A DNA stretch of 64,000 nt. It comes from Lepidodermella squamata. Its lineage: Eukaryota > Animalia > Gastrotricha. Numbering within the stretch: the stretch's first letter is position 1; each line of letters opens with the position of its first letter. The DNA lies in NCBI GenBank assembly GCA_047495785.1, contig JBLDXI010000024.1, positions 1,922,001 through 1,986,000 on the forward strand, written 5' to 3'. The position numbers and the translations under genes were made by a program. Below are positions 41,094 to 64,000 of the stretch, one piece after another. The notes under the pieces were generated by a model, which saw only the letters and a list, made by a program, of their open reading frames with translations, ran no database searches and had not been told where the DNA came from.

Positions 41094-42832
41094 ATGGATT
41101 CAGTTGCTGTTACATTCGCCATTGTTACTATTTTGATAGCAGAAGAATGTCTGGCGATGAGCCGAATGGATGTACCGTCTAACTGGCAACTAGTTCCAGA
41201 ATTCACTTTGAGAGATGGAGATGCCAGTACGTCGCCTAACAACAGACATTTGTGATAATCTCTTGGCTTGATTGGGTTTCTTTTTCATTAAGAAAATTTC
41301 GTTCCAATCGTTTCGAATGGCACGTCACCGACAAAGCAACAGAACAATAGCTTCGTACTTATGCAAACCACTTCACCACTTGGTTCATACTCAGCATTAA
41401 AATCAGCTCTATCGATACCACCGTCATACCTTCAGAACGGATTCGCGGTTGATGTCACTCTTATGGTCAAGGAGGGGCGTAAGGGAGACGGCTTTGGTAT
41501 CTTTGTTGTACCCATCGAAGGAATAACAACAAACTACTCTTCTAGTATGATCGCACTTTTTCTGATGAATGTTATTGAATATTATTCTTACAATGCAGAG
41601 AGTTGTGCTGGGATAACGATGGCTTTTCCAGGTGGTTTGTTTCTGTACGGAAGACCTTATTATTCCGATGTGTCTCTGGCGTATTCGCGCACTGCCTCAA
41701 CCAAGACCTCATACGACAAATCTCTTCAAGTGGGATCCGCCCAGAATGGCACGCTTCAAATGCTATACGACCGATTCGGCCTCGTGAGGCTTGTTGTCTC
41801 TAACGACCAAGTTAGCGTGTATGTGGATGTCGATGGAGATATCCGAACGATAGGAAATGGTACCATAGGCGTTCCAGGTGTCAGTCAAGGCGGGCCCTAC
41901 TATATGGGTGTTGGAGCGCAAGCTTACGGGTCAGCTTCCGGCGTAATTTTGAAGTCGATCGAGACTTATCAAATAAACGGACAGACCTATACAACAACGA
42001 CAACTACGACCAACCTTCCAGCTAGCACTACTTCTGTGGTAAGTTCAGAGAAATCAGAGAAATAGTAACGCTTCCTATATCAAACTCTCCGACCTATGCC
42101 TCAACATTTCCATTAACTGAACAGACGGGAACCACCCAACCAAACACAAGCAACGGCGCCCAAATAAAAACCTCCGCATCAGTTTCCCTGTCGGCTGATG
42201 CAGCAACTAAACTTCCAGAGATGCCAACTTCAAACATGGCTCTAAAGTTAGTGCCATCTTCTACGGTTCAAGCATGCAATTGCAGAATTACAAGTTAATT
42301 AATTCTAATTTCTAATCTAATTTATAAATAAGCATAGAATCCTTCTTCAGTTAATGGAACCATTCAGGTGACCGACTTAGTTACGGCTGATGGGAAGTCG
42401 ATTAGTGGCGATCCATGGCCACAAGATCTTAACAGTCCTTCAAGCAACCTTTATATCCAGGCTGTCGGCATTTTCAAGCCAGCCATCGTCCTAATTTACA
42501 GCACTACTGGTCAGTTCTGTGAGATCAACGTCACCATCACGGGTTTCAGGAAAGGAAGCGTGATTTCTGATTATATTGTCGCCCTGAGGAGTTTAACTCA
42601 ACTCAGAGAGGAAGAAATTAATGAGAAGGTAAAAATAGCTGTAGCTACGCTGCAAGCTGCTGCGTCTTCATCTCTCGCGAGTTCGTTAAATATGAAGAAC
42701 GTAATATCAGTGCGCCACTCAGGTGTCGCGATCATAGAGACTAAAGCTACGACTCCAGTGAATTCAGCTTTGATAAATTATCCTACGCTAACAAGTATTA
42801 TAAGCGCGATTAGCTGGTTGGCAAATAAATAA
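41094..42832 (+). CDS. L-type lectin - Ser/Thr stalk - SEA domain - hydrophobic tail protein (apparent frameshift/stop near 42063)
   Basis: Signal peptide; GDGFGIFVVP; PYYMGVGA...LKSIETY; SEA with GFRKGSVISDY; the ST-rich stalk continues in a different frame after TAG at 42063-42065. Confidence 0.7.
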
Positions 42833-42964
42833 GAAAATATCTGAATGCTGAATGTGAATGTGTGTATTGGTTCAAAATTAAATAGTTTATCATACGACAT
42901 ACATAGTCTTCCTTTTCAATTCCTGATATTCATAAAGTGTACATCGTACATGAGATAAAGAATA

Positions 42965-43599
42965 GGGAGCATCCATAAAAGACGTCCGGCTAAAAAGGCA
43001 TTTTTTTGACCCCTCCCCCCGCTGATGTCACATCTGCCGAACCCCCTCCTTTTCGCATGTCACAAACAGGTCACCCCCCCCCCCTGTTTTCGACAAAAAA
43101 GACACTATTTTTCGCTTATTTTTCATTCAATTTTACATAGTATGACACAAAGTTACGCACGCGCAGGTGATAGGTAAAAGCTTATGGCACCTCCCTAAGT
43201 CAACTTAGACAGCAGCGGATGTGGTAAATCACTATCGAGCATTTGTGCATACAAAAGTGTAGTAATGCTGCGCTCTCAAAATTATAAGCGGACAATGACG
43301 GAAATTAGTGACAATAATCATGACGTGATCAAACAACTTTGAATTTTCAATAGCAACACCTAGCACCTTAGGATAGCGCTGATAATTTTTAGGACCCCCG
43401 TCGCAAAACACCAGGTTTCAAAACTCGGGAAATTGAAACATCTGTTGCAAATACGCCGCGTGTGATTGCGCACTTGGCTTAATAAAAATTAGAGATAATC
43501 TCTTGTGTCCGGTCTCGCTAGACCCCCCTTAGTCTCGAGTCACACTTTGGTCGACCCCTCCCCCCCCTCGGAAGCCGGACGTCTTTTATGGATGCTCCC
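42965..43599. mobile_element. PIF/Harbinger-type MITE
   Basis: Perfect 27-bp TIR GGGAGCATCCATAAAAGACGTCCGGCT; 3-bp flanking repeat ATA at 42962-42964 and 43600-43602. Confidence 0.85.
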
Positions 43600-43630
43600 A
43601 TAACAGTTTAAAGGCAAAATCAGTCGATAA

Positions 43631-45451
43631 TTAATAAATAAGTTTGCAAATACATAACACAACTAGCAAGTTCAAGCTGACGTTAATTTGTATGGCCGAT
43701 CCATCGTTGCTACTATCAGCAATCGGCGGGCTCGTCGGCTTCTCAGCATTTGCAGTGCCTCCGGTATGACTCATAGATGAAACCTCTTTGAAAAAAGAGC
43801 TTTGATTGGTTGACGCTGTCTTCAGTTTCGTCACAGCCTGTTCGACCTTCCGTTGAATTTCTGACTCAGTCATTTGGGTCAAACTTCGGAGTGCAACAAT
43901 GTAATCAGAGATCACACTACCCTTTCGAAAGCTAGTAATCGTGACGTCGATTTTACTGAACAGATTCGTTGAGTTGTAAATAAGAACAATAGCCGGCTTG
44001 AATATAGCTTCAGCGCCTTTGAATAACGGGCTGTTGTTATTGCTTAAATCTGAGGGCCAGGGTTCACTGTTTATTGAGGTCCCATTGGACAGGGTGAAAT
44101 TCCCAACTCGAAGCGTGCCATTCCCTACAACACAAACCTGATATGAAAAGCGGCAACGGGAAGAAATATTACCTTTAAAGTCCAGATGGTCTAGCAAATT
44201 TGGCGATGAAGAAGTTAACAATAGGGATGAGGATGATTTTGAAGGGTTCGAAGAGACGGTTGATACTGATGGACCTGTCGCTGTTTGCTGCGACTTTGTT
44301 CCGCCTGTCATTGTTGAACCAGTACTAGCAGCGTTAGGAGAGGTTTTGGCACTAACTCCTCTCGATACCGTTGGTACGCTCGTGCTTGTGGCTGCAGATT
44401 GCGTTGATGCAGGATCTACTTTTGTCAATACTGGTGAAGTGATGGTAGCTGTAGCAGTTGTTGTGGTGCTAGTTTGAGGAGACGTGACTGCGGAACTGCT
44501 TGTTGTCGGGCAAGAATTCGGTCCGTATAATGTCACGGCAGTCGTTTGCGGGCCACAAGTCATCGCATCCGTATTTTTTCCAATGATTTGGTACGTCTGT
44601 ATCGACTTCAAATACACGGCTGAAATGTAGAATCCCGACATCGCGCCCACGCCCAAGTGTAACGGTGCTTTCGTACTCAAACCACTCAAGGTTATTGGGT
44701 TGGTACCGACCGTTCGCATTTGAGAGTTGACACAAACGTAAGTGCTGACCGAGTCCAACTCGACAACCAGACGGACAAGACCGAAAATGTCGTTGAACAT
44801 TGCAACTGTACCGTTTGGAGCCGTGCCTTTAACCAATGTTGGATCGATAACCTGTACAGACACAGGATCTTGCGAATAGGCTAATTGCACATCGCCATAA
44901 AACGGTCTAGCGTATAAAAACAGTCCACCTTGAAAATTTTCCGTCGTTCCCCATTTGCTCGCTAAAAAAGAGTTATAAATAAATTTTATAATTATAGCTT
45001 GCCTAACGTTTTGAACGGTTTTGTGATAGACCAATAGGAGGCACCAGGTAAAGGGCAAAACCATCGCCTTTAGAGTTTTCAACTATTTTGATAGTCAAGT
45101 CGATCGCGAAGCCAGTTCCAGCCTTCCAAAGCGAAATGGGAAGAGGCGAGGAGGAGTGAAATGCTGAGTAAGCGTCCTGAGACCCAAGCGGCATGAGTTG
45201 ATACGATTTATCATTCTGAAACTTCGGCGAAACAGATTGAGAGACAATAGTGTCAAAATAAGCTGTGACAACGAAGAGATGGACTATAACTAAATTATCA
45301 TTGAAGACAACGGGAACGAACATGCATCACCGTTGACCAAGCTGAACTGAGGCAGAGGACACCAATTCGACGGGATGTTCATTTGACAAAATGTCAGCCG
45401 CAGCATAACACTGCATGCAACAATAACTGACCAGACAAGTTGCGACAGCAT
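43631..45451 (-). CDS. L-type lectin - mucin stalk - SEA - putative GPI-signal protein (apparently intact)
   Basis: MLSQLVWSVIVACSVMLRLTFC signal; KGDGFALYLVP; LHLGVGA; ST-rich stalk; SFRKGSVISDY; C-terminus LNLLVVLCICKLIY. Confidence 0.8.
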
Positions 45452-45536
45452 TATAGAAAATCAGGAGAAAGGTCTCGAAATTAGTGTACCCTGTAACCTG
45501 GAACCTTCTTCGAAGCCTGACACGATAATAATTCCT

Positions 45537-45592
45537 TGTTTACTTCTCATCAGTATCAAACGATGCGCATTCTATATCGAGGCTTCATAATT
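45537..45592 (-). promoter_or_regulatory. Conserved upstream element shared by lectin-family paralogs
   Basis: TGTTTACTTCT(C/T)AT at 45537, 53204, 61419 and 62372, each ~75-110 bp upstream of the ATG; AGGCTTCATAATT follows in three of them. Confidence 0.45.
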
Positions 45593-45987
45593 GGCACACA
45601 GCTAGCGCCTTGGCGCTTAACAAACTCAGTCGCACGATGTTTGCGTGAAAAATACCGGGAACATCCAAATTGTTAACGACTTCAACATAATCAATCGTTT
45701 TCATATCCTTCGAAATTTCGCTTTGGGTTTTTCGAAATTATCTGACTTTCACGAAATGATCAAGCGTTACCATTAAGACTATAGAATATGATACTTGCTT
45801 TTTTAGTTCCGGCTCTTAATTCGGAATTTTAACAATTAGTAAAAGTAACAGTTGACATATTTCTAAAAATTGAAAAATCCTGTTTACAATAACGCCGGAA
45901 ATCAGAGAAAAGTGAAAACGGGAAAATGCTCCAGTAATAGCTGAATTTTGAAGAATGTTTGTTGTTTGTCTCTGCAGATTTTAAAAT

Positions 45988-47847
45988 CTAAATAAAATGA
46001 TTAAAAACTCGAAAGAACGAAACGAAAATAAAAATGATAGGTTTGTACTCTGGTGCGGTGGAAACATGTTTTGGGTCAATACTCGGTCGGGTCGAACTAC
46101 TGCTTGTGATTGCTGATCCACCTGAATGTTTCATGGTAGTAGCTGAAAAATCGACCCCACTCGATGTTATAGTGCCGCGTAATTTCGCTATAGCTGCATT
46201 GACTTTGATTTGAATTTCAGCCTCCGTAAGCTGCGTCAAACTTCTCAGAGCGACAATATAGTCTGAGATGATGCTGCCTTTCCTGAAGCCAGTTATCGTA
46301 ACCTTTACTTCAGTGAATTTGCCAGTGGTATAGATAAGCTCAATAGCAGGCTTAACGGCAGCTTCTATTTCCTTGTAGAGTTGGCTTGATGCATTATTGA
46401 GATCGTTGGGCCACGGCTCGCCAGTTAACTCAGTGCCATTGGTAAGTGCGACAGCATTAGCCCGAAGCGCTCCATCACCTGCAATTAAACAAATTCTTGC
46501 GATTAATGCCAACTTATAATGCTAAAAAATGTCGATAATAGTTTCCTCCGCGAAAAATGTATAAGCGTGACAATCGCAGTAAATTTAGTATACATATGTA
46601 ATAGTATTCAAACGACCCGAGGATTCCCTCTTTAATTGATTGATAGAGGATTGCTCGAAAATGTATTGCTATTTCACTAAGACCTTTACTGCTATTTCAA
46701 TTACCAGTTATGTCGAATCCTGGTTGCGTTGGCGAGGTGGGTTGGCCTTGAATTGGCGATTGTGTTGTAGGACGACTTGAATCTGTATCAGATAACAGAT
46801 AAGGAAGGGGTCGAACGGACTTTGTAGTAGCTTGAGTCTCACCTGTTTTCGCAACCTCAGGTATAGAGGTTGTAGGTGTTGTAGGCGCAGGAGTAGAAGC
46901 TGACAAAGTAGTAGCGGGCGTCGTAGTCGATCCAGTCGTGGAGGGAGGGGCGCGACAATTCTGGGTCTCCGTAGTCGTTCCTACCACTTGATACGTCTCA
47001 ATCGACTTCAATATCACTCCAGATGCACCGCCACCCGACTGAGCACCGACACCTACGTGTTAGGCTTGACCGTAGCTAAACTCCATGAAAGATAATGGTG
47101 CGCTACTAAACATCGTCATTACGCCATTCACACAGAAGGAAATGGTCAATTTGCCATAAGGTTGGAAAAGCATTCTTATTTGGCCGAATGTATCGTAGAA
47201 CGATTCAACAGTTCCTCGTGGGGCATCGAATTGACGTATCGATTGGTCCACAGCTGCTACACTCGTTACACCATATGAGTAAGCAAGAGCCATGTCGCGG
47301 TAGGCAGGACGAGCGTATAGAAGCAGCCCTCCTCCAAACGGTTCCTTCAAAGCGAATTTCGCTTCGTTGCCTTGAAAAACAAATGCATCAAACTAGGCAA
47401 AGCAAAATTATGTTTAAATACTATTAGAACCATTGACAGCCAAACTCGAAGGTGGTACTATAAAAATTGCGAAGCCATCGCCAGTGGTGCCTTGGATAAT
47501 CTTTAATGTTGTATCAATAACGAAGCTGAACATAGGTTGCCAGAACGCAGACGGTAACGGCGTGGCAGTGTAAACACCTGATCCTGCGAAAGTCAAATCC
47601 TCTTTCAGCAGCTGGATTGTTCCATCAGGTAGGACAACCGGCCAGAAATTATAAGAAAAGAATGTGCGGAAGTTCGCTGAAGTAAAATTCCTGAATATTA
47701 AGTGAAGATAAGCTGAGCTATAAACGTACTCATGTCAGCATTCCTCAAGGTGTATTGGTCCTGTGGAGCCCAGTTAGATGGCACTGTGAACTGGCCATCA
47801 CAGCACCATATCATCAACGCTGCTAGCAAAAGCGTCAGCCTAGACAT
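45988..47847 (-). pseudogene. Lectin-mucin-SEA-GPI paralog with an in-frame nonsense codon
   Basis: MSRLTLLLAALMIWCC signal; TGDGFAIFIVP; GQA-TAA-HVGVGA at 47060-47062 where paralogs have Tyr; SEA GFRKGSIISDY intact. Confidence 0.7.
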
Positions 47848-48022
47848 ATGGGATGAGAAAATTCCCCTCTGAAATGGAAAAAATTGTCTACTTTACCCTG
47901 CTCGATACTGAATGGACAATTAAAAATTTCAGACAATTATCGTGCTTTACTTTTCATCATCCGCACTGTAAATACCGGACATATAAACAACAGAAAATTG
48001 GTTTACTGCTTGCAATGATTTG

Positions 48023-50516
48023 TCATATTTCTCTTCGCATCACTTCACCATAAATGAAAATTATTGCAACTGCAAAAAAGCTTGGTTCATTCCGATATCC
48101 TGTGGACTTTGGCGAATTGTTGGCTGTTTCCTTCGGATCAACCTTGCCAGAAGAGCCAAGCGATTCGACAGAATTAGGCTGACTGACCATGCCACCGGAA
48201 TGACTTACTGACTCGACGTTATCGAAATTTAGGGAACCTGCAGTTTCCGCAGCTGCTTTCAGCTTTTCAACAGCCGCTGTGACTTTTTGCGATATTTCCG
48301 ACTCTGTCATTTGCGTCAGGCTTCTCAAAGCGACGATATAGTCCGAGATTACACTTCCTTTTTTGAAGCCAGTGATAGTTACGCTTATCTCAACGAACTG
48401 GCCAGTAGTATTGTACATTAGAAAGATCGCCGGTTTGAATATGGCCACTGCTTCTTTAAATAAGGAGCTTGACGCATTGCTCAGATCTTGAGGCCAGGGT
48501 TCTCCGCTCACAAATGTCCCATTTGCCAGGGAAAACGCGGTAACATGAAGCTTGCCACTTCCTAAGGGTACTCATGATATAAAATAAATAAAATTTATAA
48601 GGAAGAGGGAAACCTTTGGTTTGAAAATCCTTCGAAGCCGAAGTAAGGGAAGAATCTGTTTGACCCTTTGTGGACCCTTTGGCCGTTGAAGATCCAGCAG
48701 TTTTTACTGTTGTAGTAATTGACGGAGCTGGGGTTGTTTTCGGGGTATTAGTAATAGTTGACACAGTTCTGGTAGATTTAGCTGTGGTTGTAGTTTGTGG
48801 ACCGCAGGTCATCTGATCATTGTTTGATCCCTTGATTGTATATGTTTCGATAGACTTCAAAAATACTGCAGAAGCAAACTGCCCTGACTGAGCCCCAGCC
48901 CCGATGTAATAGGGACCCCCAGAGCTCAAACCAGTTAAATTGAAAGAAGGTTTTCCAAATGTGTAGAGCGTATTATTCCCACAAATGTAAGCACTAACAA
49001 GATCTCCCGAACGAAAATGGCCTGACTGGTTTTAGATATTTATTGACCGTATGGATGTTTTAACGATGTTTATTGACCAAGTCGCTCCAAAAAAACGTCA
49101 GCTCGATGTTGTTATGACGTTTTTAGCTAATAAAGCGCAACAGTCTAAACCGGTCTCAATAATGGCTAGCCCTTTTTGCTAATGGATCGAAGTTTTGGCG
49201 ACTTTCGCAGACCCCATTTTTTGCGATGCCTTTTTCTGCGACCTTTCTGCCAATTAGCACTCTAGGAAAGCGCGATATTTCTCGACTTGGTGGGTGCGCT
49301 AGACATAAAATGACTATTTCTTGAACTTTATTTGGAATTGTCTAAAAACTTCCGTGACAGCTTTCTAGTAAAATGAACATCTAGAAATATCAATAAATAA
49401 TCGGGCACCCGAAAGCCTAGTAAGGTCAAAATAATTGCTGGGAATGATTATCTGGAACCCTCTAAAATATTTCAAGCCCTGTATCCAGGACATGGGACTT
49501 GGCAAAAATCACCAAGTCTAAAGTACAACTTATTTATAAACCAATTTAATCAATAATAATCATGTGATAGCTGGTGGCGTAGTGGGTGAGGTGTTGGGAC
49601 TGTGTCATCAAGGTCACAGATTCAATCCTCATCAGCAACAGTTTTTTAATTATAGTTTAAATTATACCCCGACATTACATTGACATTTCTAGGTATTAAC
49701 TTGGCTAGAGGTTCTTAAGAAGTTTATTGACAATTCCAAATAAACATCTAGAAAACATCCAAGCGTAAATACCTGAAAACATCTAGAAAAGTCAGCAAAT
49801 TTTCGTTCGGGCTCCTTCAACAACTATTCTCACTACGGTAAATTCGTCGTGAAAAAGCTGTATGGCTGTTCCAACAGGAGCAATGCCAACGATGAAAGTG
49901 TTATTATAAGGGGAAAAGTCTGTCGCTGTGCTCGAGAAAGCGAATTTAACATCTCTATAATAAGGCCTCCCATAAATAAAGAAGCCGCCTTGAAACTTAT
50001 CCAGCACACCGGCGTTACTGGCTAGTGAAAATTAGAAAAAATGTGTATTGGCCTTCAGAAGATTGATATATAATACCGGAAGACTTGTTGTTTGATAATC
50101 CACTATAAGGCACGACAAAAATGCTGAATCCATCTCCTTTTGCTGATACATTCAGCATGAGGGTGAAATCCATCGCAAAGCTTGCGCCACCTTGCCAGAA
50201 CGAGGATGGGAGAGCCGAAGCTGACCGCATGCCAGAGTTCGAATAATAGTTATCAGATTTCATTAATGCTATCGTGTTATCGGTCATTTTTGTTGGAGTA
50301 ATAGATCTCGTTGAGATAGTAGGAATAAAATATGCTGGAAAAATTTATCTTCAACGATGGGACACATGTTTTGCTTCATAGCAACTTACTAATATCCCCA
50401 TTTATCAAAGAATACTTCGGAATCAAGGTCCAGTTGGGAGGAATGTTCATTTGCGATGAACATAGGCTGCATTCTAGCAAAATAACCGCAAGAATAGCTA
50501 CTAAGTACCTCACCAT
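48023..50516 (-). pseudogene. Lectin-mucin-SEA paralog interrupted in the lectin exon by a transposon
   Basis: MVRYLVAILAVILLECSLC signal; KGDGFSIFVVP; removing 49006-49811 plus one CT restores VVEGDLVSA in frame; SEA GFKKGSVISDY. Confidence 0.8.
49006..49811. mobile_element. Non-autonomous EnSpm/CMC-like element with a tRNA-like cassette
   Basis: TIR CCCGAACGAAAAT; 2-bp target duplication CT at 49004-49005 and 49812-49813; A-box TGGCGTAGTGG and degenerate B-box GATTCAATCC at ~49575-49630. Confidence 0.8.
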
Positions 50517-50767
50517 AGCGGCCATTTTTTTGAGGGATGTGGAAGCTATCCTGCAAGTCTGCTGGAGATGCGCCGTTCTGTTTACATACCATCAGTATAG
50601 ATCTTAGAACCTTTTCAAGACAGTCACCCAATTAAATAGGGCCTCAACCTGATGTCTTCCTTGTTATCTTCAGATTCATTCAAGAGATACACAATATGAT
50701 TTTAACAAGCGATAAGAAAATTAATAGATCGATAGTAAATAAGCTTGTACAAACAAAACACCTAGGA

Positions 50768-51273
50768 CATTATAGGGCGACTTTGCAGTCACGTGAATAA
50801 GGTCAAAGTCCGTCTATTTTTTTCTGGTCTTGGTCGCGCGGTCGCGCAGTCGTTGTGGTCGGGCGGTCGTGTAAAAAAATGCTCACTTAAAAATGAGAGA
50901 AAAAAAACGATGCACCACCAGGAGTCGAACTAAGGATGTTGGAATAAAAAGCCATGTTTTTGATCCACTACGCCACCAGTTGAAGAAATCGGCCGGGAAA
51001 ATATTTACACCCATATTGTTGCTAATCGGATCCACTGATAGAAACTCTTAATTGCCATGAATTGGTGGCGTAGTGGATCAAAAACATGGCTTTTTATTCC
51101 AACATCCTTAGTTCGACTCCTGGTGGTGCATCGTTTTTTTTCTCTCATTTTTAAGTGAGCATTTTTTTACACGACCGCCCGACCACAACGACTGCGCGAC
51201 CGCGCGACCAAGACCAGAAAAAAATAGACGGACTTTGACCTTATTCACGTGACTGCAAAGTCGCCCTATAATG
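50768..51273. mobile_element. Palindromic non-autonomous element (EnSpm/CMC-like) with 211-bp inverted arms containing tRNA-like sequence
   Basis: Arms 50768-50978 and 51063-51273 appear perfectly complementary; ends CATTATAG; 2-bp target duplication GA; each arm has TGGCGTAGTGG (A box) and GTTCGACTCC (B box). Confidence 0.88.
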
Positions 51274-53098
51274 GAGGTTCATTATAAAATCAATCCTCAT
51301 TTCCGAGCCTTTGCTGCTGCCTTCAGGCATTGGTGGGGTGTTCGGCTTATCGGCAATGGCGTTGCCTCCATTATGACTTATGGATGTAACATCGTTGAAG
51401 AAAGCCGCGAAAGTGGTTGACGACTCCTTCAGTTTCGTTATAGCCTTTTCGACCTTAAGCTGAATTTCCGACTCAGTCAGTTGCGTCAAACTTCGCAGTA
51501 CAACAATGTAGTCACAGATCACACTCCCTTTCCGAAAGCCAGTAATCGAGATGTTGATTTTGCTGAAAAGCTCCGTTGTGTTGTAAATCAGAACGAGAAC
51601 CGGGTTGAAAATAGCATTGGCCTGTCTGAATAATGGGCTGCTGTTGTTGCTCAGATCGGAAGGCCAAGGTTCGCCGTTCATTGAGGTTCCGTTGGACAGG
51701 GTGAACTGGACGACCCGAAGCATACCATTACCTATGAAGATAAAATGATTAGAAAGTCTCAAAACTGAAAGTATACGTCTATTATTACCTGTGAAATCGA
51801 GAATGCTTGACAAATCCGATGGGGAACTCGTCACCAATGGTGATGAGTATGATGCGGTAGGGTTCGAAGATAACACAGACGCCGATGCAACTTTCGCTGT
51901 TTGTTGGGATTTCGTTGTTGAATCGGTGAGAAGGTTAGCGATTGTCGTAATGTTCGCTGCGGTCGAGGCCATGCCGCCTTTTGATAATAATGATAGCAAG
52001 TTTGAGTTTGTTGCGGTCGATTGCAATGATTTAGAAGTTATTGTCGTTGAAGTTGAAGATGAAGTACTGCTGTTAGTTGTGATTTTAGCAACGCCTGAAG
52101 TCGAGCTACTAGCTTGAGTAGTGGTGGTTGAAGAACTGCTTGTTGTCGGGCAATAATTCGGTGTAGTAGATGGCACGATAGTCGTTTGTGGGCCACAAGT
52201 CATTGCATCTGTATTATTTCCCACGATTTGGTACGTCTGTATCGACTTCAAGAATATAGCAGATACGTAGTCTCCCGTTTGTGCGCCCACGCCCAAGTGG
52301 TACGGTCCGGATGTGCTCAATTTGCTTAAAGTTATCGGAGGGGCGCCGATCTTTCGCATCTGAGAGTTGACGCACACGTAGGCACTGACTTGGTTCTGCT
52401 GAACAATCAGACGAACAAGGCCGAAAGTGTTGTAGAACATCGCAACTGTTCCACTTGGAGCAGAACCCTTAATTAAAGATGAATCCACAACTTCTATTTT
52501 CAAAGGGGTTTGCGAGTAGGCGATTCGCACGTCATTATAAAAAGGCCTGGCGTATAAAAAAAGTCCACCTTGAAAAGCTTTCTTCGTTCCCCAATTGCTT
52601 TCTGTAAGGTGAATAATAGAATCAATTTTATTCATTTTAGCTAACTTTACGGCTCGATAGGTTTTGTGATAGACCGCTAGGAGGTACCAGATAAAGAGCG
52701 AACCCATCGCCTTTAGAGTTTTGAATTACTTTGACAGTCAAGTCAATCGCAAAGCCAGTTCCGGCTTGCCAAAGCCAAGAAGAGAGGAGCGAGGCTGAGT
52801 AAAATGAGGAGTATGAACTTGTGGCAGTTGAACTCATCAGTTGATACGTAATATTATCACTCTGCAACTTCGGCGAATGTGATTTAGAGAAACCAGTGTA
52901 AAAGTTGGCTAGAAAGGAAAGAAATTAAATTTTCAGATAGGCACTCGCGGTTAGGGACTAACATGCATCTCCATTGGCTAAGCTGAATTGGGGTAGAGGG
53001 CACCAATTCGATGGAATATTCATCTGACAACAGGCCAGCCGCAGCAAACCGCAGCAGAACGAAGCAAAAATAGGTGACCACCAGCTTAGCAATATCAT
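51241..53098 (-). CDS. Lectin-mucin-SEA paralog whose hydrophobic tail is replaced by transposon sequence
   Basis: MILLSWWSPIFASFCCGLLRLACC signal; KGDGFALYLVP; GFRKGSVICDY; ends MNL-HYRATLQSRE inside the palindromic element. Confidence 0.8.
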
Positions 53099-53647
53099 GT
53101 TTCAATGAGGAGCTGGTAGAAAAGTCTGGAAAATTTCATCTGAAGTACCTGAAAACCTTCTAAATCCCGAACCCGCTCAGGAGCCTAGTTCGATGCTTCA
53201 TCATGTTTACTTCTCATCAATATATAAAAAAGTTGCGCATGCTATAACAAGGCTTCATAATTGGCACATAAAGAACGTGATGGAGTAACGGGATTTCAAT
53301 AATTAACATATTTTGCTTATTTTTAGCCTCGGCTTCACTGGGCGTATTCGGGCAGACCGCCATAACAGCAAATACTTCGTATATACAGTATATATACAAA
53401 ACTCTCTCAGTTGAGTCAAACTCCTCAATGCGACGATATAATCAGGTGTCACACTTCCTTTCTTGAAACCAGTTTGCTGACACTGATCTCGCTGAACGCG
53501 CCAGTGGTGCTGTAGATAAGGGTGATAGCAGGTTTGAAGATACCAACGGCTTCTTTGAAAAGGTTACTTGAAGCGTTGTTAAGGTCTTGTGGCAATGGAT
53601 CGCCACTAATCGATGTTCCATTAGCCGTCACAAAATCAGTCACTTAA

Positions 53648-54354
53648 CCCTTTTGACCCATCAACACACGGGTGTGTGACCACTTTGGAAAATTCTGAAA
53701 AATCAAGTGTAACTAATAAGGCTTAGCGTTTTTGTTCAATAGGGAGGGGAGTAGTTACTTAGTTAATATTGATTTTCTCATATTTTTTGCAGACACCTAA
53801 GTTATGAAATTTATTGGTCAAAAAAAACTAAGACCAAAAAATCGATTTTTCTCACACCGATATTTTTGAAGTATTTTTTTTCCTATATATATTTTGGTTG
53901 GCTATTCATAGCGTTGTGGATTATCAAGGTGAAAGGTGTGGCTACCATATGAGACAAAAATTTCAATATTACGAGGCTAGATGGCGGCGTGATAAAACAC
54001 GAAAGACACGACACACGGGTGTGTTAGCGGGCCAGATTTTCATTCATCTGTAGTACATTTCTATTATTAGTATCATATTAGTGAAATCTTTACTGCTTAA
54101 CTGCTTGAAAAATACGAAGGCTAGGAACCTGCGGTTTCAGAATTTTTATCAATCAAGGATAGGAGAATACGTCTATGCTTTCTTTCAGGGGGTCATAAAT
54201 TTGACAGATTACGTAATACGGTAATTACGTCACTAATTAGCGGTTGGTAATAAAAATATAAGAAGGTCGGATCTGAAATCAGCGCATCAAGTTTAGTCAG
54301 GGACGAAGTTCTCATAATTTTCCTGTGGAAAAAAGGGGTCTGGGCTAATACGGG
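53648..54354. mobile_element. piggyBac-like non-autonomous insertion
   Basis: TTAA-CCC...GGG-TTAA ends with imperfect terminal inverted repeats. Confidence 0.55.
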
Positions 54355-54371
54355 TTAAGCAATCTTGGATG

Positions 54372-54993
54372 GGTCTAAATAAGTGCACCACCTAAAATGA
54401 GGTTCCAGCGCTAAATTTGTGAGTGCGTCCACCTAAAATGCAAACAGGCGGCACTAAATCTTCGCGCCACCTAAATAATGAATCCAGCACTAAATAATTG
54501 GTGTGGCACTAAATAATAGCTTAGGCGCGCCGCCGAGCAATATTTAAGGCGGCTCAGTCATCATATCATCAACTGCATCATCATCATCTCGTCATTATTA
54601 TTTCTTGGTTATTATTCTGAAATGGAGGAAGTGCCCCTCTTAATCATCGATACGGCCGAAAATCTGCCGCCGCCGCAACCAGCCAGTCGTCGACGCGGCA
54701 AGGAGCAGGTCTGGACGTGTGTTCAACAGTTCGAGGACGAGGAGGCTGCCGACGATCACGTCGCGGACACCGGCACAGCTTGGTGGTGGAATAACGGCCA
54801 CTCGTACCTCACCAACCGCGGCATGATGCACTACTTCGACTGCTCACACCCTGGTAGCCAAAGTAAGCTCCGAAACGTTATTCATGCCGATTCGCTGTAC
54901 GTGTCGCTGGAAGAAAACGACATCAACCATGATCATTCGCAACCGAAGAAAGAAAAACAGCGCGGTTTGCCCCCCAGCAACTCGACGTTGTAG
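54372..54993 (+). mobile_element. 5' fragment of a MULE-like element
   Basis: Subterminal CACTAAAT/CCTAAAAT repeats at 54372-54550, then ORF 54622..54993 (W...YFDCSHP...SKLR...NHDH) resembling the N-terminal Zn-finger region of MULE transposases; truncated against lectin-gene stalk sequence. Confidence 0.55.
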
Positions 54994-55781
54994 GTGTTCT
55001 GCTGGTTGGTTCTTGCTCCGTTGTAGTTGAAGAAGTCGTTGGCACGGTTGTTGTTGCCTCAGACGTGGTGCTAGAGGCATAAGTGCTCGTTGGAGCTGAA
55101 GTAGTTGTCGTTGTCTCAGGGGTTGTAGCAGTCCAACAGTCCATGCTATCTAGAGTATGTCCAATGATCTGATAGGTTTCGATGGACTTCAATGTAACGC
55201 CGGAAACAAATCCACCAGCTAAAGCTCCAACACCCATGTAGTAGGGCCCACCGTTACTCAACCCTGGGGTGGCTATGGTACCCGATCCTATCGTCCGGAA
55301 ATTCCCATCAACACAAACATAGGCGCCAACTTGATCCTAGTTGACAACGATCCTCACGATGCCATATCTATCGTTAACAAGTTCAATTGCACCACCTGGA
55401 GCGGATCCAAGTTGAAGAGAGTTGTCGTATGAATGTTTCGGGGAAGTGAGTAAGCCAGAGAGACATCGTAATAATAAGGCCTTCCGTACAGAAACAAGCC
55501 ACCTTGAAATGGATACGCTACCCCAGCGCAACTAGCTGAATTTATTCAAGAATAGTATTCATCACCATTCATTAGTTAGAAGAAAATATTGCAGCTCATA
55601 CCGGAAGAGTAGTTTTTAGTTACTTAAATCGCAAAGATTCTAACGTAATGATTTATTTGCCAACGTCAAAAAAGCTCAGATACAATAATGAAATATTCAC
55701 AATTACAGGGGCTCAGTTTATGCCTGTTTTTTTCTAGATTCGACTATCTATGCGCCGGGGAACTGGGTATGAGCGTAAGAA

Positions 55782-58495
55782 TTAAGCAGAGATATCCACT
55801 ATTCGATAAGTTTCGATTGACTTGACATAAACCCCGGAACATTTCGCCTCAGCATGTGCTCCAACTCCGAGCCAATAAGGACCCGAAGTGCTGAAGTTTT
55901 CAAGTGCCGCCGATAAAACTGCTGTTGATCCGTCGTTGAGAATAATTGTTGCGGTGACATGGTTCCCTCGAAAAACAAGGTTCACCGTATGATCACCAAA
56001 CATTTTATCAAGTGTGCCTTCCGGTGCGGCAGCGATTTGACACCCGTCAGCTCCAATGGCAGTGCAGCGAGGTTCAATCTTCGAGTTATAGTAAAATAGC
56101 CTGACTTGGGAGTAATGGGGTCGCACGTGGAAAGCGAATCCACCTGACAAGGGATATTTCGCTCCATAATACGATGTACCGCCTTGAAAATTGTGTATAA
56201 GTACCCGATGAAACAAAATTTGCTTTAATGAGAATTACCTTGCTTCACAGGGTTCGGGAGAGATTCTTGAGGTATTAAATAAATCGCGTAGCCGCCACCA
56301 AAAGTTCCTCGCTCTAATGCTAAGGAAACTCTAACCGCAAAATTTGCAAATGGCGTAAACAGCGCTGAAGGTAGGGACGATTTCGAAATCATCGCAGCTT
56401 GAGCGAACCGAGCATAGGAAAACATCAGAGCGTAACGTTTGTCGGGCATAATCTTCTGCGCTGGCATAGAAATCGCGAATGCTGAGAAGTTTTCTAAAAC
56501 GGAAATGATGGAAGTAAATGTAAAGAGACATCTAGCCATACCAGGTTTTCCGTCAGCGAAAGCGTAGCCTGGTACCTTTTTCCACGAACTTGGTATGTCA
56601 ATTGTAGGGCTGGGTGTTGTTGGTGCTGCTGTGTTTGTAGGTGAACCTACCCCGTATACACGTATAGATTTTACGTAGACATTAGAGGATTCGGTTCCTG
56701 AAGCAGTTCCAACGCCCAGGTAGTAAGGTTCGCCAGAACCAAAACCACCCAGAGTTACGGGAGTCGTGTCAAATCCATAAACAGATCCATCAGAAAATGT
56801 TAGATTTGCCGTTAGCGCTTTGTTTTCAATGATCATGCGAACGGTCATGTCATTAGCCAAAGCTTTAGATATAGCTGCCTTATCGGCATTGGCTTTGAAG
56901 ATTTCCGGTTGACTGCCTACTCCTGTGGTCGTCGGCGCATTGGAGTAAGCAATAGGAATCTGAGCACCATCGTAGCCAGGATATGGCCTCACAAGCATGA
57001 CAATACCTCCTTGAAACGGCTCAGTTAGCGAGTAGGCAGACCCTTCGGAAATGTTATCAAAATAAATTTAGACTAAGTACAATGTTCTTGAGAAAATCTT
57101 ACCATAGAAGTTGGGCTGCTCTGATATACCTTGTCTCGGTACAATGAAAATTGCATATCCATCACCAGGCGTACGTTTTGGGCTGTTATTCATCCGCATG
57201 GTTATCTCAACAATGCATTTAGCGTTAGTCGCTTCGAACAAATAACTTGGTAACGCGATTTTTGAGTAGATGCCGCAAGACGAAGATTGCACAGTTTCAT
57301 CCATCAGCTTTACAGTTAGATCGTTCATCACCCGCGGTTTGATTATCGGGTTTTCTGTCGAATTGTAGTTTTCTACAGGTCAGCGAAAAAGTTTTAAAAA
57401 CGTATAAATCTATAGCATAGCGCATTAACTCATATCTCCGTCCATCAGGGTGAACTCTGGTAACAACTGCCCGTTGCTTGGTTCGGCTTGAGCAGTGATA
57501 GTTGAAGTTTTCGAGTTACGCAATGGCGTCGTAGACGGTTTTGATGTGGGTTTCGTCATTGTAGTCGTTGTTGATGTTGTCGTCGGAGAAGAATCGGAAC
57601 ATGTCATAGGTGGATCGACGGGCAATCCGGTAACATATGTTTTTATCGACTTCAAAATCACTTCGACAGCATGTTCACCATTGAAGGCGCCGACTCCCAG
57701 GTAATAATCCCGCGGAATGGGGTTTGTAGGTGATGGGGAAAGTCCTTTCGCCAGCTGAGGTGTGGCAACATTAACCAATGAATTTCCCGCGCATGCGTAG
57801 GTTGTCACGCTGTCACCTTCGATTGCTAACCTTAACGTGGCGAAATCGTTGTTGAATCGGTCGACAACCCAAGGCTCTGCTTTTGCAAGCACCAAAGACT
57901 CATCGTCTACTGTCTTGGTAGTCTTCACAGCTGAGAATGCGAGAGCGGCACCCCTCCCGGGCCTCGCGTAAAAAACTAGACCACCATTAAAAGGGCTTGC
58001 CAAAATTCCAGGACCTGCGATTTATTTTCTGAAATACCATGAAAAATTAGGTAAGTAGAGTGAGCTTACCACTGGCGTTAGCTGCAATACTTTCGAGTGG
58101 AACTAAAAAAACCGCGAAGCCGTCTCCTATGCTCGTTGGTATTATCTTGATGCTGATATCAATAACTAAACCCGAGGTAAAATATGCAGTGGTTATTGTC
58201 GTCGCCGAAATGAAAGCAGCACTGACATGGGTCTTTGTAGAATCAACTATTCGAAACGAGCCATCAGACAGCTTGGCTATGGGTGAAGCATCAGCTGACA
58301 AGTAGTTCTTGAAGTTACCTAGGTAGCAAAATGAAATACAGGCTAGGTCCCATTGCGTTTTATGCATGGCTTACTGTTATCTCCACTGTACATGGAATAA
58401 GGTGGCCACATTCTCCAGTGTGTAGGAACCGTCGTATCGCTGTAAACTGCAACCAAGCAGAAAATAGAAATTGCGCTGAGGCGCGTCAAAATCAT
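55782..58495 (-). CDS. Secreted protein with three tandem L-type lectin-like domains
   Basis: MILTRLSAISIFCLVAVYS signal; three copies of G(D/G)G(F/Y)A(I/V)(F/Y)xxP...YxLGVG...KSI; Thr-rich linkers; no SEA domain or hydrophobic tail. Confidence 0.78.
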
Positions 58496-58682
58496 CGGTC
58501 AAGTGTCTGTCGCTTTAGAATAAATGCCTCCTGCAGATAGATTGATGAAAGAATGCAATGATAAATCGCAAACAAGAAACAGACGCTGTGTAAATAGCGA
58601 AGACAAGTTTTAATGACTTGATAACTGAAAAATAATTGCTTAGTTTTATTCTTCTGTTGATTTTATTCCCAATCAGATGGGC

Positions 58683-61340
58683 TTATCGCAGGTTGCTAGG
58701 TATTTCATATGTTTCGATCGATTTCACATAGACCCCAGACGAGTTCCTTTCTGCATGAGCCCCGACTCCGAGATAATAAGGCCCTGATGATTTGAATTCA
58801 GGCAGATTGCCTGTCAACACCGTCGAGTTTCCGTCTCCGAAGACGATCGTCGCAGACACGCTCTCGTCTTCGTAGAAAGCAAGAATTATCGTATTTTCGC
58901 CGTACATCTTGTCGATAGTTGCCGCAGGAGCTGTTTGAAGAACGAATTCCACATTGTTAATTTCAAATCCTGGCGGAGTTGTCGAAGGGTCGGGCTGGTA
59001 ATACAACAATCTGACATGTTGCGTATTAGGAACCGCCAGGAAAACGAAACCGCCCTGGAACGGAGCTTTCAAGCCGTAGAACGAAGATCCGCCTAAAATT
59101 TTGACATTGAATCAAAACGACAGCATGACGGAAAGTGAATACCCTTTTTAACAGGGTTCGCCAGAGAAATAGCTGGAACGACGAAAATAGCAAAACCACC
59201 TCCGCGTGTGCCCTTCTCCAGGGTCAATTTGACCTGGACGGCGAAATTAGTTGAGGTCGGTAGAGGATGCTTTGACGTCATAGCAGCTTGCGCATGACGA
59301 GCATAAGAAAACATCAAGGCGTATCGTTTGTCGGGCAATTTCTTCCCAGTGGGCATTGTTATTGCAAAAGGGTAAAAATTATCTTGAAAAGGAATAGCAT
59401 TGCAGGCTTAGGATAGTATTTTCCAAATATTACCAGCATTGCCATCTTTGAAAACGTGGGTTGGGATGATTTGCCAAGTGTCTGCATTATCGATTGTCGG
59501 AGCTGGCAATGTCGTCGTTTCGGGCAACTTGTCTTCATAGACATTAACGGACTTGATGAAGACATTTGAAGCTAGCATTCCAGCCGCAGCTCCAACGCCC
59601 AAGTAGTAAGGCCCACCTTGATCGAAACCGGACAAAATTACAGGCGAAGTGTTGAAGCCCGCTTTCGACCCATCGGCGAATAGGATTTCAGTACTAAGTA
59701 CATCCCTTTCAATTATCATGCGAACAATGAAATCACATGTCACCGCTTTTACGATGGCTGAATCTACAGCTTTGGCTTTGGTGATAACCGGAGCCATCGC
59801 TTTAGCAGCAGTCGGCGTTGCTGAGTAGGCAATAACAATTTCTGAGTAGCAAGGCCTCCCATATACAACCAATCCTCCTTTAAACGGATTCTCCAGAATA
59901 TAAACAGTAGCTTTATATTAAAAGATTTAATCGATAAATCATCTGAAAGTTTCTCAAAACGTACTGCCAAACGAAGGCTGATCTGATATGCTGGACCTCG
60001 GTGCTATGAAAATCGCAAATCCATCACCAGAAGTTATACCAGGGCTGTTATTCATTCGCAACTCAATGTTTACGACACACTTTGTCCCAGGAGTTGTGAA
60101 GGTGCTGCTAGGTAACGCCACTTTCGAATAAATACCACTATCAGCCATAGTCACTTTTTCACTCATGAGTTGAATTATTTGGTCAGGCGTCTTAATCGGC
60201 GTGAATTTTTTAGTTTTCGAGACGTTGTAGTTACCTGAAAAATTAATTATGAAATACGAATGTTTGAGGATGCGTAGAGTTGGGGATTACTCAAATCTCC
60301 ATTCAGGAGAGTGTAAGCTGGCAATAGTTTCCAAGAAGAGTCTGGCGGCCATTGTTTTTGACCTGATGCAGAGCATGATACCGGTGTTGTTGTAGTTTTA
60401 TACCTAGGTGTAACCGTGGTTGTTGAATCACACTCCATCTTGTAGACAAGAGTACAGCTCACGATGTAAGTTTCGATTGATTTGAGGACGACGCCTGAAG
60501 CGTGCTTGCCATTGTGAGCCCCAACGCCTAAATGGTATGTGTTCAGGTTCTTCGCTAGTCCACCCAGTGTCAGTGGCGGGTTGCCGACGGCTTTCAGTTG
60601 GCTCGCGCCATAGACATAAGCACTGACGTAATTCCCTGAAATCATCAATCTGACGACCCCGAATCCATTCGACGAATTCAACAGTTGAACCACTGCACTC
60701 TCTGCGAATCCTTTCACAAGCGATGTTTCGTAAGCCGGTACTTCGGTCTGCGTAGCCGAATAAGCCAACTTTGTATCGCTGTAAAAAGGCCTCGCATAGA
60801 AAAACAGTCCACCCTTAAACTTTGTCAAAACTCCAGCATCTTGTTCTGTGAATAATGAGTTATCCTTTGTTTGGCAAGTCATTTTGGAACTTACCACTCG
60901 AAAAATTCCCTCCTAGACCTGTTTTCGGCACGAGAAAAATTGCAAAGCCGTCGCCACCTTTGGGGTCAGCTTCTACATCGAATTCAATTTTAATCGTCAC
61001 ATCTATTACTAAGCTGATGCCCGTATCTAGTTTTGGTAACGGATCAACTGAGTAGAAGGCCGAATCAGAATTTGCCGTTGTTGTTCCCATCATTTTGAAG
61101 CTGCCGTCAGTTAAACGCTTGGGCGCTGTTGAATCAGTGATGATTGGAATGAATTTTGCTAAAAAATATGCATCTTGCAAACATGGATCAAATGTAAACT
61201 TTTCAGCCTCCATTACATGCGTCTCCGTCTTTCAAAGTATGCGACGATAGCAACGACCACTCTGCGGTTGGCTTGTTCAACTGAGCCCATGCGGTGCTGC
61301 AATGTAGGCAACAAAGAATAGCAATTTGAAAGGCGACCAT
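58683..61340 (-). CDS. Secreted protein with three tandem L-type lectin-like domains
   Basis: MVAFQIAILCCLHCSTAWA signal; GDGFAIFLVP, GDGFAIFIAP, GGGFAIFVVP; ends ETYEIPSNLR. Confidence 0.78.
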
Positions 61341-61793
61341 TACTCAAAAGGAAATTTCTGCGAAATGTCGCACGCAACACCTCACCACACTTACCTAAGT
61401 CTTGTATCGATAGAAAAATGTTTACTTCTTATTACAATTATTTTTTAACGAATCGATTGTTATTACAAAAATTGTCCACAGGCATAAGAAATCGAGGTAA
61501 AAACCAATATTTATCAAAGCAGTCACCATCGGCTTTTCCCAGGTTACTGTGTTACATTTGGTAGTTCTTTCTCGATATCGATTCGATTAAGACCCGCAAG
61601 CCTACTGAAAAAATTGATCTTAGCTAATTACATCTAAGAATTAAAAGGCTACTCATGAAAAGATTCTCATGTGTGCACATTATTGGGCGTTCTACTATTA
61701 GCGATTTTCCTTTTTTTCAGATGAATGAAAGGTACGACAGATACAGATACATTTCAAGGCGACGTAGTGGTAGGATGGTCATTAGATACATAA

Positions 61794-62299
61794 TTAGTAA
61801 ATAAGCTTGCACATGGATGAGAGAGTAATGAGGTTCAAGAAGAACTCAACTGTTATTTTGGAGCCTTTGTTACTGCTTTCAGTCGTCGGTCGGCTCTTTG
61901 GCTCATCAACAATTACAGTGCCTCCAGTATGCTTTATGGACGTGACATCTTTGAAAAAAGATCCGAATTTGGTTGACGCCGCTGTCTTGAGTTTCGCGAC
62001 GGCCTGGTCGACCTTTAGCTGAATTTCCGACTCAGTCAGTTGCGTCAGACTTCGCAATGCAACAATGTAGTCAGCGATCACACTTCCCTTTCGAAACCCA
62101 GTAATCGTGACACTGATTTTGCTAAAAGCCTCCGTAGTGTTGTAAATGAGAACAAGGGCTGGGTTGAAAATCGCATCGGCCTAGCTGACCAAGCTGAATT
62201 GGGGAAGAAGGTACCAATTCGATAGAACGTTCATTTGACAACATGCCAGATGCAGCAGAAGAAAGTAACAATTGGAGACCAATCGCTTTGCGAAAGCAT
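61794..62299 (-). pseudogene. Internally deleted lectin-SEA paralog (exon 1 fused directly to the SEA domain)
   Basis: Exon-1 sequence ...PQFSLVS joined at ~62182 to ADAIFNPALVLIYNTTE...GFRKGSVIADY; frameshift in the signal region and TAG at the junction. Confidence 0.78.
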
Positions 62300-63046
62300 T
62301 TTTGGAGGTCAGCTGCAAGAAAAATCTCGAAAACAGCCTCTCTTGGACCCAATACCTCCCTGCTAATTTCTTGTTTACTTCTCATCAAGATCCAACGATT
62401 TGCAGTAATATTGAGGCTTCATAATTAGCCTATAAAAAACTCAGGTGTACGTTGTACGGGGTATTCGAGAAAAATTACTGGAAAGTCAAAATGATAAACA
62501 ATTTCAATAAAAGCAATCGTTTTTCCAATTCTCCGGATTTCGGAATACATTGCAGGAATTAATTTGCCACGGACAACTGAGAATGGTCTTTTTCTCTTTT
62601 CTTTTTACCATAATGCACAGAGAACACATTTCAATCCGCTTCGGGTTTTCCAATTCGATCATAGATAAATCAAGATTAGAACAACAAAGGCTTAGCAAGT
62701 TCTTTCCGAGGATCAATATTATCAGACTTTGACGAATAGGTTAATATCGCTAAGTTCTCAGATGTTGGGACCATGAATGTTAGAGGTTTTCGAGTCATCT
62801 TTCTAAACTCTAAACCAGAATTAAGTAGACAGCTAAAGGCGACCGAGGCGACCTAATTATTACGCAGGCTGTTCTGAAGGTGGAAACAATAGTTCGCTAA
62901 AACTACACTTTGTGCACAATCTTGTTGGTGAAAAAACTGAGGTGAGCTTGCTTTAAGCGTGTTTTGAGCAAAATCAAGATTTTCTGCCAACATTATTTGC
63001 TCAGTTTTATTCTTCTTCTGTTAATTTTATTCAGTATCAGACAGGC

Positions 63047-64000
63047 TTAGAATGAGTTACTATTAGGTAATTCAAATGTTTCAATCGATTTCACATAGAC
63101 CCCAGACGAGTTCCTTTCTGCATGAGCCCCGACTCCGAGATAATAAGGCCCTGATGATTTGAATTCAGGCAGATTGCCTGTCAACACCGTCGAGTTTCCG
63201 TCTCCGAAGACGATTGTCGCAGACACGCTCTCGTCTTCGTAGAAAGCAAGAATTATCGTATTGTCGCCGTACATCTTGTCGATAGTTGCCGCAGGAGCTG
63301 TTTGAAGAACGAATTCCACATTGTTAATTTCAAATCCTGGCGGAGTTGTCGAAGGGTCGGGCTGGTAATACAACAATCTGACATGTTGCGTATTAGGAAC
63401 CGCCAGGAAAACGAAACCGCCCTGAAACGGAGCTTTCAAGCCGTAGAACGAAGATCCGCCTAAAATTTTGACATTGAATCAAAACGACAGCATGACGGAA
63501 AGTGAATACCCTTTTTAACAGGGTTCGCCAGAGAAATAGCTGGAACGACGAAAATAGCAAAACCACCTCCGCGTGTGCCCTTCTCCAGGGTCAATTTGAC
63601 CTGGACGGCGAAATTAGTTGAGGTCGGTAGAGGATGCTTTGACGTCATAGCAGCTTGCGCATGACGAGCATACGAAAACATCAAGGCGTATCGTTTGTCG
63701 GGCAATTTCTTCCCAGCAGGCATTGTTATTGCAAAGGGGTAAAAATTATCTTAAAAAGGAATAGCATTGCAGGCTTAGGATAGTATTTTCCAAATATTAC
63801 CAGCATTGCCATCTTTGAAAACGTGGGTTGGGATGATTTGCCAAGTGTCTGCATTATCGATTGTCGGAGCTGGCAATGTCGTCGTTTCGGGCAACTTGTC
63901 TTCATAGACATTAACGGACTTGACGTAGACATTTGATGCAAAATATCCAGCCGAACCTCCAACGCCCAAGTGGTATGGCCCACCTGAGGCAAAGCCAGTC
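63047..64000 (-). CDS. 3' part of another multi-lectin gene (continues beyond the window)
   Basis: Last lectin domain and its introns nearly identical to 58710-59555; ends ETFELPNSNSF. Confidence 0.8.

Follow-up and report, generated by a model that had tools for sequence, protein, structure and literature searches.

A tandem array of genes with predicted L-type lectin-fold heads, in stalked SEA-domain and triple-head forms, in the gastrotrich Lepidodermella squamata

Layout of the array and state of its copies

We analyzed a stretch of 64,000 nucleotides from the gastrotrich Lepidodermella squamata (GenBank assembly GCA_047495785.1, contig JBLDXI010000024.1, positions 1,922,001 to 1,986,000 of the forward strand), referred to as the window throughout. 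Its positions 41,094–64,000 carry ten related units that share a domain of ∼225 residues with a predicted L-type (legume-like) lectin fold, subsequently named the head; the units hold 14 head domains in total. The DNA is of the animal type, and its GT-AG introns are very short (∼45–60 nt). The whole window was scanned in six frames for the motifs G[DG]G[FY]A, F.GG, [YH]LGVGA, KSI.TY and GS[VI]I.DY: head and SEA motifs are confined to positions 41,484–63,921 and do not occur in the first 41 kb. Spliced gene models were assembled from the open segments with a simple donor/acceptor score, and every full model starts with a hydrophobic, signal-like N-terminus. A head is spread over three exons (a, b and c). 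Exon a, which closes with a phase-1 donor, bears the signal peptide or an inter-head linker together with the motif W..P.y.L.nGDA; exon b terminates in GDGFAIFLVP, and exon c runs from F.GGLFLYARP via LGVGA to KSIETY and then on into the stalk or linker.

The units come in two architectures (Table 1). Seven of them (A–F and I) follow the order signal peptide, head, Ser/Thr stalk, SEA domain and short hydrophobic tail, and are called the anchored form below. The remaining three (G, H and J) are of a triple-head type: a signal peptide precedes three heads with short Thr/Pro linkers between them, and the stop codon lies 7–8 residues past the third KSIET(Y/F). A first-pass annotation of this DNA had proposed at least ten units, seven of them bearing a stalk or SEA domain and three with tandem heads and no anchor, in anchored and secreted versions. 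The motif scan and the gene models agree with this count, both gene forms are present, and the observation of the array is confirmed. The possibility that J and the remnant I constitute one gene with three heads and a SEA domain was considered and rejected, as the third head of J ends in a stop and I has its own signal-type exon, again followed by a stop. In most of the genes B–H a single cysteine is found just after the first head in an M-x-C context (e.g. DAMTCGPQTT); gene A does not have it. As far as the sequence goes, this residue could serve in an inter-chain disulfide.

Table 1. Units of the array and the insertions within them, with positions counted from the first nucleotide of the window (aa, amino acids; TIR, terminal inverted repeat)
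Feature	Position	Strand	Description
Gene A	41094–42832	+	Signal, one head, short Thr stalk, SEA, weak hydrophobic tail; 439-aa model; intact
Gene A exons	41094–41226, 41293–41544, 41599–42038, 42338–42832	+	Stalk intron 42039–42337 predicted only
Gene B	43631–45451	−	Signal, head, 139-aa Ser/Thr stalk, SEA (FRKG-SVISDY), hydrophobic tail ...NLLVVLCICKLIY; 555 aa; intact
Gene C	45988–47847	−	Anchored architecture; in-frame TAA at 47062–47060
Gene D	48023–50525	−	Anchored architecture; last head exon split by 806-bp TIR element
TIR insertion in D	49006–49811		806 bp, ends CCCGAACGAAAAT..., 22-nt arms 86% complementary, AG/AG flanks; non-coding
Gene E	51241–53098	−	Anchored architecture, closest to B; current frame ends ...MNLHYRATLQSRE, no hydrophobic tail
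Palindrome in E	50768–51273		506 bp, perfect, 214-nt arms (100% complementary), 78-nt loop, ends CATTATAGGGCG..., TC/TC flanks
Unit F	about 53300–55760	−	A-related pseudogene, inverted, 72–81% nucleotide identity to A
Gene G	55782–58495	−	Signal and three heads, Thr/Pro linkers; 793 aa, 7 exons; stop 7 residues after third KSIETY
Gene H	58683–61340	−	Signal and three heads; 779 aa, 7 exons
Unit I	61794–62381	−	Signal/first exon (...QMNVLSNWYLLPQFSLVS, then stop) directly joined to second half of SEA and hydrophobic tail
Gene J	63047–64000 (cut by window end)	−	End of head 2 and head 3 of a triple-head gene

The stalks are 75–147 residues long (28 residues in A) and consist of 39–50% Ser plus Thr and 5–15% Pro, a composition of the mucin type. 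For the domain behind the stalk, the Pfam SEA family PF01390 gives 29.0 bits in B at a cut-off of 26.4 bits; E and A, with 25.2 and 21.8 bits, fall slightly under it. A profile made from six copies matches the SEA domain of ADGRF1 at an E value of 0.006, placing FRNGSIVAGY over FRKGSVISDY. The sequence F(R/K)KG-S(V/I)I(S/C/A)DY was found in all six aligned SEA copies, in which G68, S69 and I71 are invariant, as is the segment DYIV.LRSLTQ that follows the cleavage motif. The self-cleavage motif G-S(V/I)I is intact and cleavage is predicted. By hydropathy, the C-terminus of B, C, D and I is a hydrophobic stretch of 12–17 residues with no cytoplasmic part, and G and H have no hydrophobic C-terminal tail. 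A type I transmembrane helix with an endoplasmic reticulum (ER)/Golgi sorting motif was not found in B, G or H: the hydrophobic stretches of B are the N-terminal signal and the extreme C-terminus.

Four of the ten units, A, B, G and H, are intact from end to end, and J is open up to the window edge. In gene C the in-frame TAA replaces a Tyr or Leu two residues ahead of GVGA, giving A(stop)HVGVGA where other copies have YYLGVGA or LHLGVGA; C is likely a pseudogene or a null allele. In gene D, the reading frame and the expected strand ...RIVVEGDLVSAY... are regained by deleting the TIR element plus one AG. A second copy of this element is not present elsewhere in the window. We rejected the explanation of the 806-bp break as an ordinary intron, given the 22-nt terminal inverted repeats and the 2-bp duplication; moreover, all GT-AG options delete a core strand. 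The palindrome in gene E interrupts the last codons of the C-terminal signal, and the former hydrophobic tail resumes beyond it as ...LGVLFVQAYLLSIY-stop (to ∼50721). The palindrome may represent a foldback element of very recent origin, or else an artefact of the assembly. ARAGORN called no tRNA in it, although part of the arm looks tRNA-like. Unit F, an old pseudogene, has accumulated several defects: the first head exon (exon b) is degraded, the second carries a frameshift and a stop, the SEA domain is frameshifted at 53643–53400, and the stalk is broken near 54925 by ∼1.2 kb of foreign DNA (53700–54925). The foreign DNA contains an open reading frame (ORF) of 123 residues (54622–54993, + strand) with no Pfam match at E ≤ 0.01. 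Unit I is a deletion remnant without head and stalk, and its SEA domain has lost the first half.

Sequence exchange between copies is indicated as well. Positions 58745–59520 of H and 63112–63887 of J are ∼99% identical over ∼775 bp, covering the third head and part of the second, in two paralogs 4.4 kb apart. Since the two genes are diverged on both sides of this block, it indicates gene conversion. Together with the disabled state of five of the seven anchored units, the tract shows that the array undergoes birth-and-death turnover rather than plain expansion. The first-pass annotation had described an expanding array; the multi-copy tandem arrangement stands, whereas the notion of expansion is weakened by the number of disabled copies.

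Fold of the head and its putative ligand site

In order to describe the fold of the head, we use an AlphaFold model of exons b and c of gene A, read in frame through the 54-nt intron, with an alignment of all half-heads in the window. The model reached a predicted local distance difference test score (pLDDT) of 82.4 and a predicted template modeling score (pTM) of 0.82, and is disordered only at residues 79–108, which include the 18 residues of the read-through intron. A Foldseek search against the PDB returned L-type lectins exclusively among the best 50 matches, with E values of ∼1e-8 to 1e-6. In VIA-align comparisons the closest structure was p58/ERGIC-53 (Z 19.0, root-mean-square deviation (rmsd) 2.2, 180 residues), and Z scores of 18.5–18.8 and 17–18 were determined for VIP36 and legume lectins, respectively. 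For ERGIC-53 and VIP36 the rmsd is 2.2–2.5 over 180–187 residues at Z 18.7–19.0; across the cargo receptors including Emp46/47, ∼185 of the ∼198 ordered residues match at an rmsd of 2.2–2.6. A search independent of Foldseek yielded ERGIC-53, VIP36, the legume-lectin domains of Entamoeba and Methanocaldococcus, Emp47 and peanut lectin at Z 16.2–18.7; the next tier, made up of other concanavalin A-like folds at Z ≤ 14.9, comprises a phage carbohydrate-binding module, YwfG, Aap, SraP, the thrombospondin C-terminal domain and GH16 enzymes. In the ESM Atlas, clusters of PF03388 came first with template modeling (TM) scores of 0.72–0.73, and a PF00139 kinase cluster was also among the matches. At the sequence level the PDB gave a single, weak match: the profile of the N-terminal half placed GDGFAIFlVP over ADGFAIFIAPP of the legume lectin 5t50 at an E value of 0.07. 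The model thus supports an L-type lectin fold for the head. The L-type lectin domain claimed earlier, for which a concanavalin A-like sandwich was expected, is borne out as a fold by Foldseek, by VIA and by the Foldseek-independent search. The motif W...nGDA of the first exon would fit the N-terminal strands that are absent from the model. Our classification places the heads under the L-type lectin fold and not under functional L-type lectins.

ERGIC-53 contacts mannose through Asp121, Asn156 and the main chain of Gly251-Gly252-Leu253, and sugar binding also needs two Ca2+-ordered loops, 155–161 and 176–185 (PMC3912170). Possible counterparts of parts of this site are seen in the heads of the array. 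Of the 11 full heads, 9 contain the loop-A Asp within GDG(F/Y)A(I/V/L)(F/Y), where it is aligned to ADGFAIF of 5t50, and the glycine-rich segment GVGA..G is invariant across the heads. Past the GG strand there is only one Asp, which occurs in 6 of the 11 heads, and one Arg, that of the YARP segment, which occurs in 10; the strands following GG are connected by a 4-residue turn in the model. By its residues, the canonical Ca2+-dependent sugar site is not conserved. The model leaves room for a reduced, shifted or metal-free site.

From these observations we consider it probable that the array is a lineage-restricted tandem family under birth-and-death turnover, encoding glycoproteins of the secretory pathway, surface-bound or released, with the L-lectin-fold head as their working part. 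The heads would bind a ligand without the canonical Ca2+ site and would be carried either on mucin-SEA-lipid-type stalks that can be shed or as soluble trivalent proteins. The anchored form would be displayed on the cell surface with an O-glycosylated stalk and a glycosylphosphatidylinositol (GPI) anchor. Its cleaved SEA domain would act as a force-sensitive break point and allow shedding of head and stalk. The soluble triple-head form might cross-link ligands in a multivalent manner or compete for those of the anchored form. We would expect the ligand site on the concave face, where the invariant loops GDG, GG and GVGA..G surround it. As this is not a canonical Ca2+ site, the ligand may be a glycan bound in a metal-free manner or may not be a glycan at all.

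Several results weigh against this interpretation. Pfam gave no family at E values up to 1 for eight head pieces. A profile of the C-terminal half-head searched with HMMER against 1.84 billion representative proteins revealed no credible relative, the sole match, a repetitive protein of 3348 residues at E 4e-5, being taken as noise. Likewise, the C-half and whole-head profiles found nothing among the PDB sequences. The head model lacks the strand of the first exon and includes the 18 read-through intron residues, and the AlphaFold model of the SEA domain, from six sequences, has a pLDDT of only 43. GPI anchoring of the stalked form is inferred from the shape of the tail by simple hydropathy only; the tail is weak in A, ends in charged residues in D and is destroyed by the insertion in E. 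The third heads of G, H and J have GGG instead of GDG and have lost the Asp, and no Asp, Asn, Glu or His is kept at ≥90% anywhere in the C-terminal half, the counterpart region of Asn156 and the Ca2+ loops of ERGIC-53. Furthermore, only A and B are intact among the seven anchored units, C, D, E, F and I being disabled.

Part of this list would also fit heads that are not lectins. We regard it as rather unlikely that the L-lectin sandwich serves here as a protein-binding or structural module, with the family building a glycocalyx, a cuticle or a mucus layer or mediating protein–protein adhesion. The same sandwich is used for protein binding or structure in arcelins, in α-amylase inhibitors and in many plant lectin receptor kinases (LecRKs), and arcelin-1, a metal-free non-lectin, matches our head model as well as true lectins do (Z 17.5 in VIA); the fold alone is therefore no proof of sugar binding. 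The loss of the Asp in third heads and the lack of conservation of the Ca2+/Asn loop residues are in line with this alternative, and long mucin stalks with SEA domains are typical of barrier mucins. However, the loop-A Asp of nine heads and the GDG and GVGA..G segments resemble the sugar-contacting elements of ERGIC-53, where the backbone amides of Gly251-Gly252 take part, and all of the nearest structural neighbour families are carbohydrate-related.

Divergence, selection and transcription

Among the anchored genes, the heads are 35–67% identical and the SEA domains 49–72%. The SEA domain is thus the better conserved part, as had been noted in the first-pass annotation, although the gap is not a dramatic one. 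Nonsynonymous divergence (dN) amounts to 0.49–0.65 in the heads and 0.26–0.34 in the SEA domains, a ratio of ∼1.5–2, while synonymous divergence (dS) is saturated in most pairs. B and E form the only unsaturated pair: their dN/dS values are 0.27 (head) and 0.28 (SEA domain), and no 40-codon window exceeds 0.62. This pair is under purifying selection with no sign of diversifying selection, and the earlier description of the family as variable and diversified is not backed by these values.

The same data bear on the proposal that the array is a repertoire for recognizing glycans in immunity or symbiont recognition, made in receptor and soluble versions and currently diversifying and expanding. 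We consider this improbable. In its favor are the tandem multiplicity, the two architectures and the higher rate of amino-acid change in the heads than in the SEA domain; pseudogene turnover and a conversion tract are also common in immune gene clusters. However, the low dN/dS of B and E holds along their length, five of the seven anchored copies are broken, the proteins contain no signalling part, the canonical sugar site is missing, and glycan binding is putative.

The heads of the triple-head genes correspond by position: G1 and H1 are 39% identical, G2 and H2 49%, and G3 and H3 54%, compared to 26–31% across positions. The three-head layout therefore predates the split of G and H. Nearest to the anchored heads is H1 with 34–44% identity (G1 30–37%), while heads 2 and 3 reach only 27–33%.

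Evidence for expression was obtained from contigs of two runs, X1 and X2, the former a DNA run. The X2 contigs match the window at ≥99% identity for 92 of 102 pieces. They skip exactly 56494–56541 in G and 59092–59141 in H, both with GT..AG ends on the gene strand, and three loose ends of X2 contigs, at 59383, 59910 and 56238, run across the predicted junctions 59383/59433 and 59911/59964 in H and 56183/56238 in G. None of these five joints is seen in X1. Since the joints coincide with the top-ranked predicted introns and are missing from the DNA run, X2 contains RNA. All five testable introns of G and H were predicted correctly, and these two secreted-form genes are transcribed and spliced as modeled.

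A further X2 RNA contig has a C-terminus of the J type (...NSNSF-stop) with a loose end at 58697, and departs from the window five bases past the stop; its 3′ untranslated region has no match elsewhere in the window. The likely source of the contig is a different allele or an additional paralog located past the end of the window. The X1 DNA contigs differ from the window by ∼2% over G (55700–57292) and by up to ∼10% in parts of H (59449–60023), with small indels, which may reflect divergent haplotypes, strains, or paralogs collapsed in the contigs.

We also consider it improbable that the anchored genes are decaying leftovers and that function in this array is confined to the secreted triple-head genes. 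In favor of this view, C, D, E, F and I are disrupted, RNA evidence was found only for G, H and the J-type contig, and sampled words are present in X2 at ∼10% over B and C vs 28% over the G/H region. Against it, genes A and B have open frames throughout and keep their motifs, purifying selection between B and E extends over the whole length including SEA domain and tail, and the insertions in D and E are of recent origin, with palindrome arms that are 100% identical, and may exist on a single allele.

Comparison with known systems and neighbouring genes

If, as we think, the array is a tandem family of ligand-binding surface and secreted proteins, it differs from the systems in which the fold is established. 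To our knowledge, the known L-type lectins of animals are a handful of intracellular cargo receptors. We did not find the combination of L-lectin, mucin stalk and SEA domain in the databases searched or in the full-text literature (lectin terms combined with SEA, mucin, GPI or rotifer), in agreement with the earlier judgement that an extracellular, SEA-linked L-lectin family is unusual. A word index of 5.8 billion entries queried with the long ORF of B gave nothing for the whole ORF, which was swamped by Ser/Thr words, nor for its head or SEA part, and a scan of JGI metagenome contigs produced 60 pattern matches, none of which was confirmed. Neither Pfam nor sequence searching recognizes the heads, and structure prediction alone reveals them, which is a warning for the annotation of such genomes.

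The best structural matches (Z 18–19) are ERGIC-53/LMAN1, VIP36/LMAN2 and Emp46/47, which share with the heads the loop-A Asp in a strand of the DG(L/F)A(I)(W/F) type and a glycine-rich loop past the penultimate strand. In contrast to these cargo receptors, the heads are only 10–14% identical to them, have no Pfam match and conserve no counterparts of Asn156 or of the Ca2+ loops. The array proteins also have no transmembrane helix, coiled-coil stalk or ER-sorting tail; instead they are encoded by many tandem copies and either carry a mucin stalk, a SEA domain and a GPI-type tail or consist of three consecutive heads. Legume lectins share the fold (Z 17–18) and provide the only match at the sequence level, in the ADGFAIFIAPP strand, whereas their Mn2+/Ca2+ site is not conserved here.

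Other extracellular uses of the fold are similar in design. Plant LecRKs employ it as the extracellular head of a receptor, occur in tandem arrays and often miss the sugar-binding residues; they are plant proteins with a kinase output, whereas the proteins of this animal array have a lipid-type anchor or none. The bacterial proteins SraP, Aap and YwfG (Z 14.2–14.7) likewise present an L-lectin-like head on a long, repetitive, serine-rich or glycosylated stalk. However, they have a cell-wall anchor, unrelated stalks and no SEA domain, so that the likeness is one of design and not of descent. On the side of the stalk, the SEA mucins MUC1 and MUC16 as well as ADGRF1 have a Ser/Thr-rich region followed by a membrane-proximal SEA domain with G-S(V/I)(V/I), but these are transmembrane proteins with a cytoplasmic tail or seven transmembrane segments and bear no lectin-fold head, whereas the array proteins have only a short hydrophobic C-terminus.

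A broader and more tentative proposal, to which we give less than even weight, is that an animal lineage moved the L-lectin fold from its ER-Golgi cargo role into a private extracellular system, with metal-independent heads on mucin-SEA-GPI stalks that can be shed and on soluble trivalent proteins, convergent with plant LecRKs and with bacterial serine-rich-repeat L-lectin adhesins. Should the heads act as ligand-binding modules on the surface of cells, the array would provide the first case of an animal in which several genes use the L-lectin fold outside the cell, and this without the canonical calcium site. The array permits a natural comparison of anchored single-head and soluble triple-head forms. 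In addition, the inactivation of several copies can be followed in the sequence: a transposon has entered one head, a palindrome interrupts one anchor signal, and a deletion has fused signal exon and SEA domain. The array should therefore be useful for studies of surface-gene turnover.

The first 41 kb of the window contain trypsin-like, Hsp70-like, ZIP-transporter and DUF268 genes. Four diverged Hsp70-like genes lie in tandem on the + strand (8144–24313), with large exons at 8144–9157, 11942–13766, 15862–18036 and 23402–24313; the first of these exons, the only one of the four genes that was checked, matches the Pfam HSP70 family at E 1.6e-41. Three tandem ZIP zinc-transporter genes with His/Asp-rich N-terminal exons occupy 29873–37385 on the − strand, and one of them matches Pfam Zip at E 8.8e-36. 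Trypsin-like protease genes are located at 2986–5400, and one of them (3727–4704) bears a long Trp/Thr/Pro repeat of the form TTWPWWPTTT beside the protease domain.

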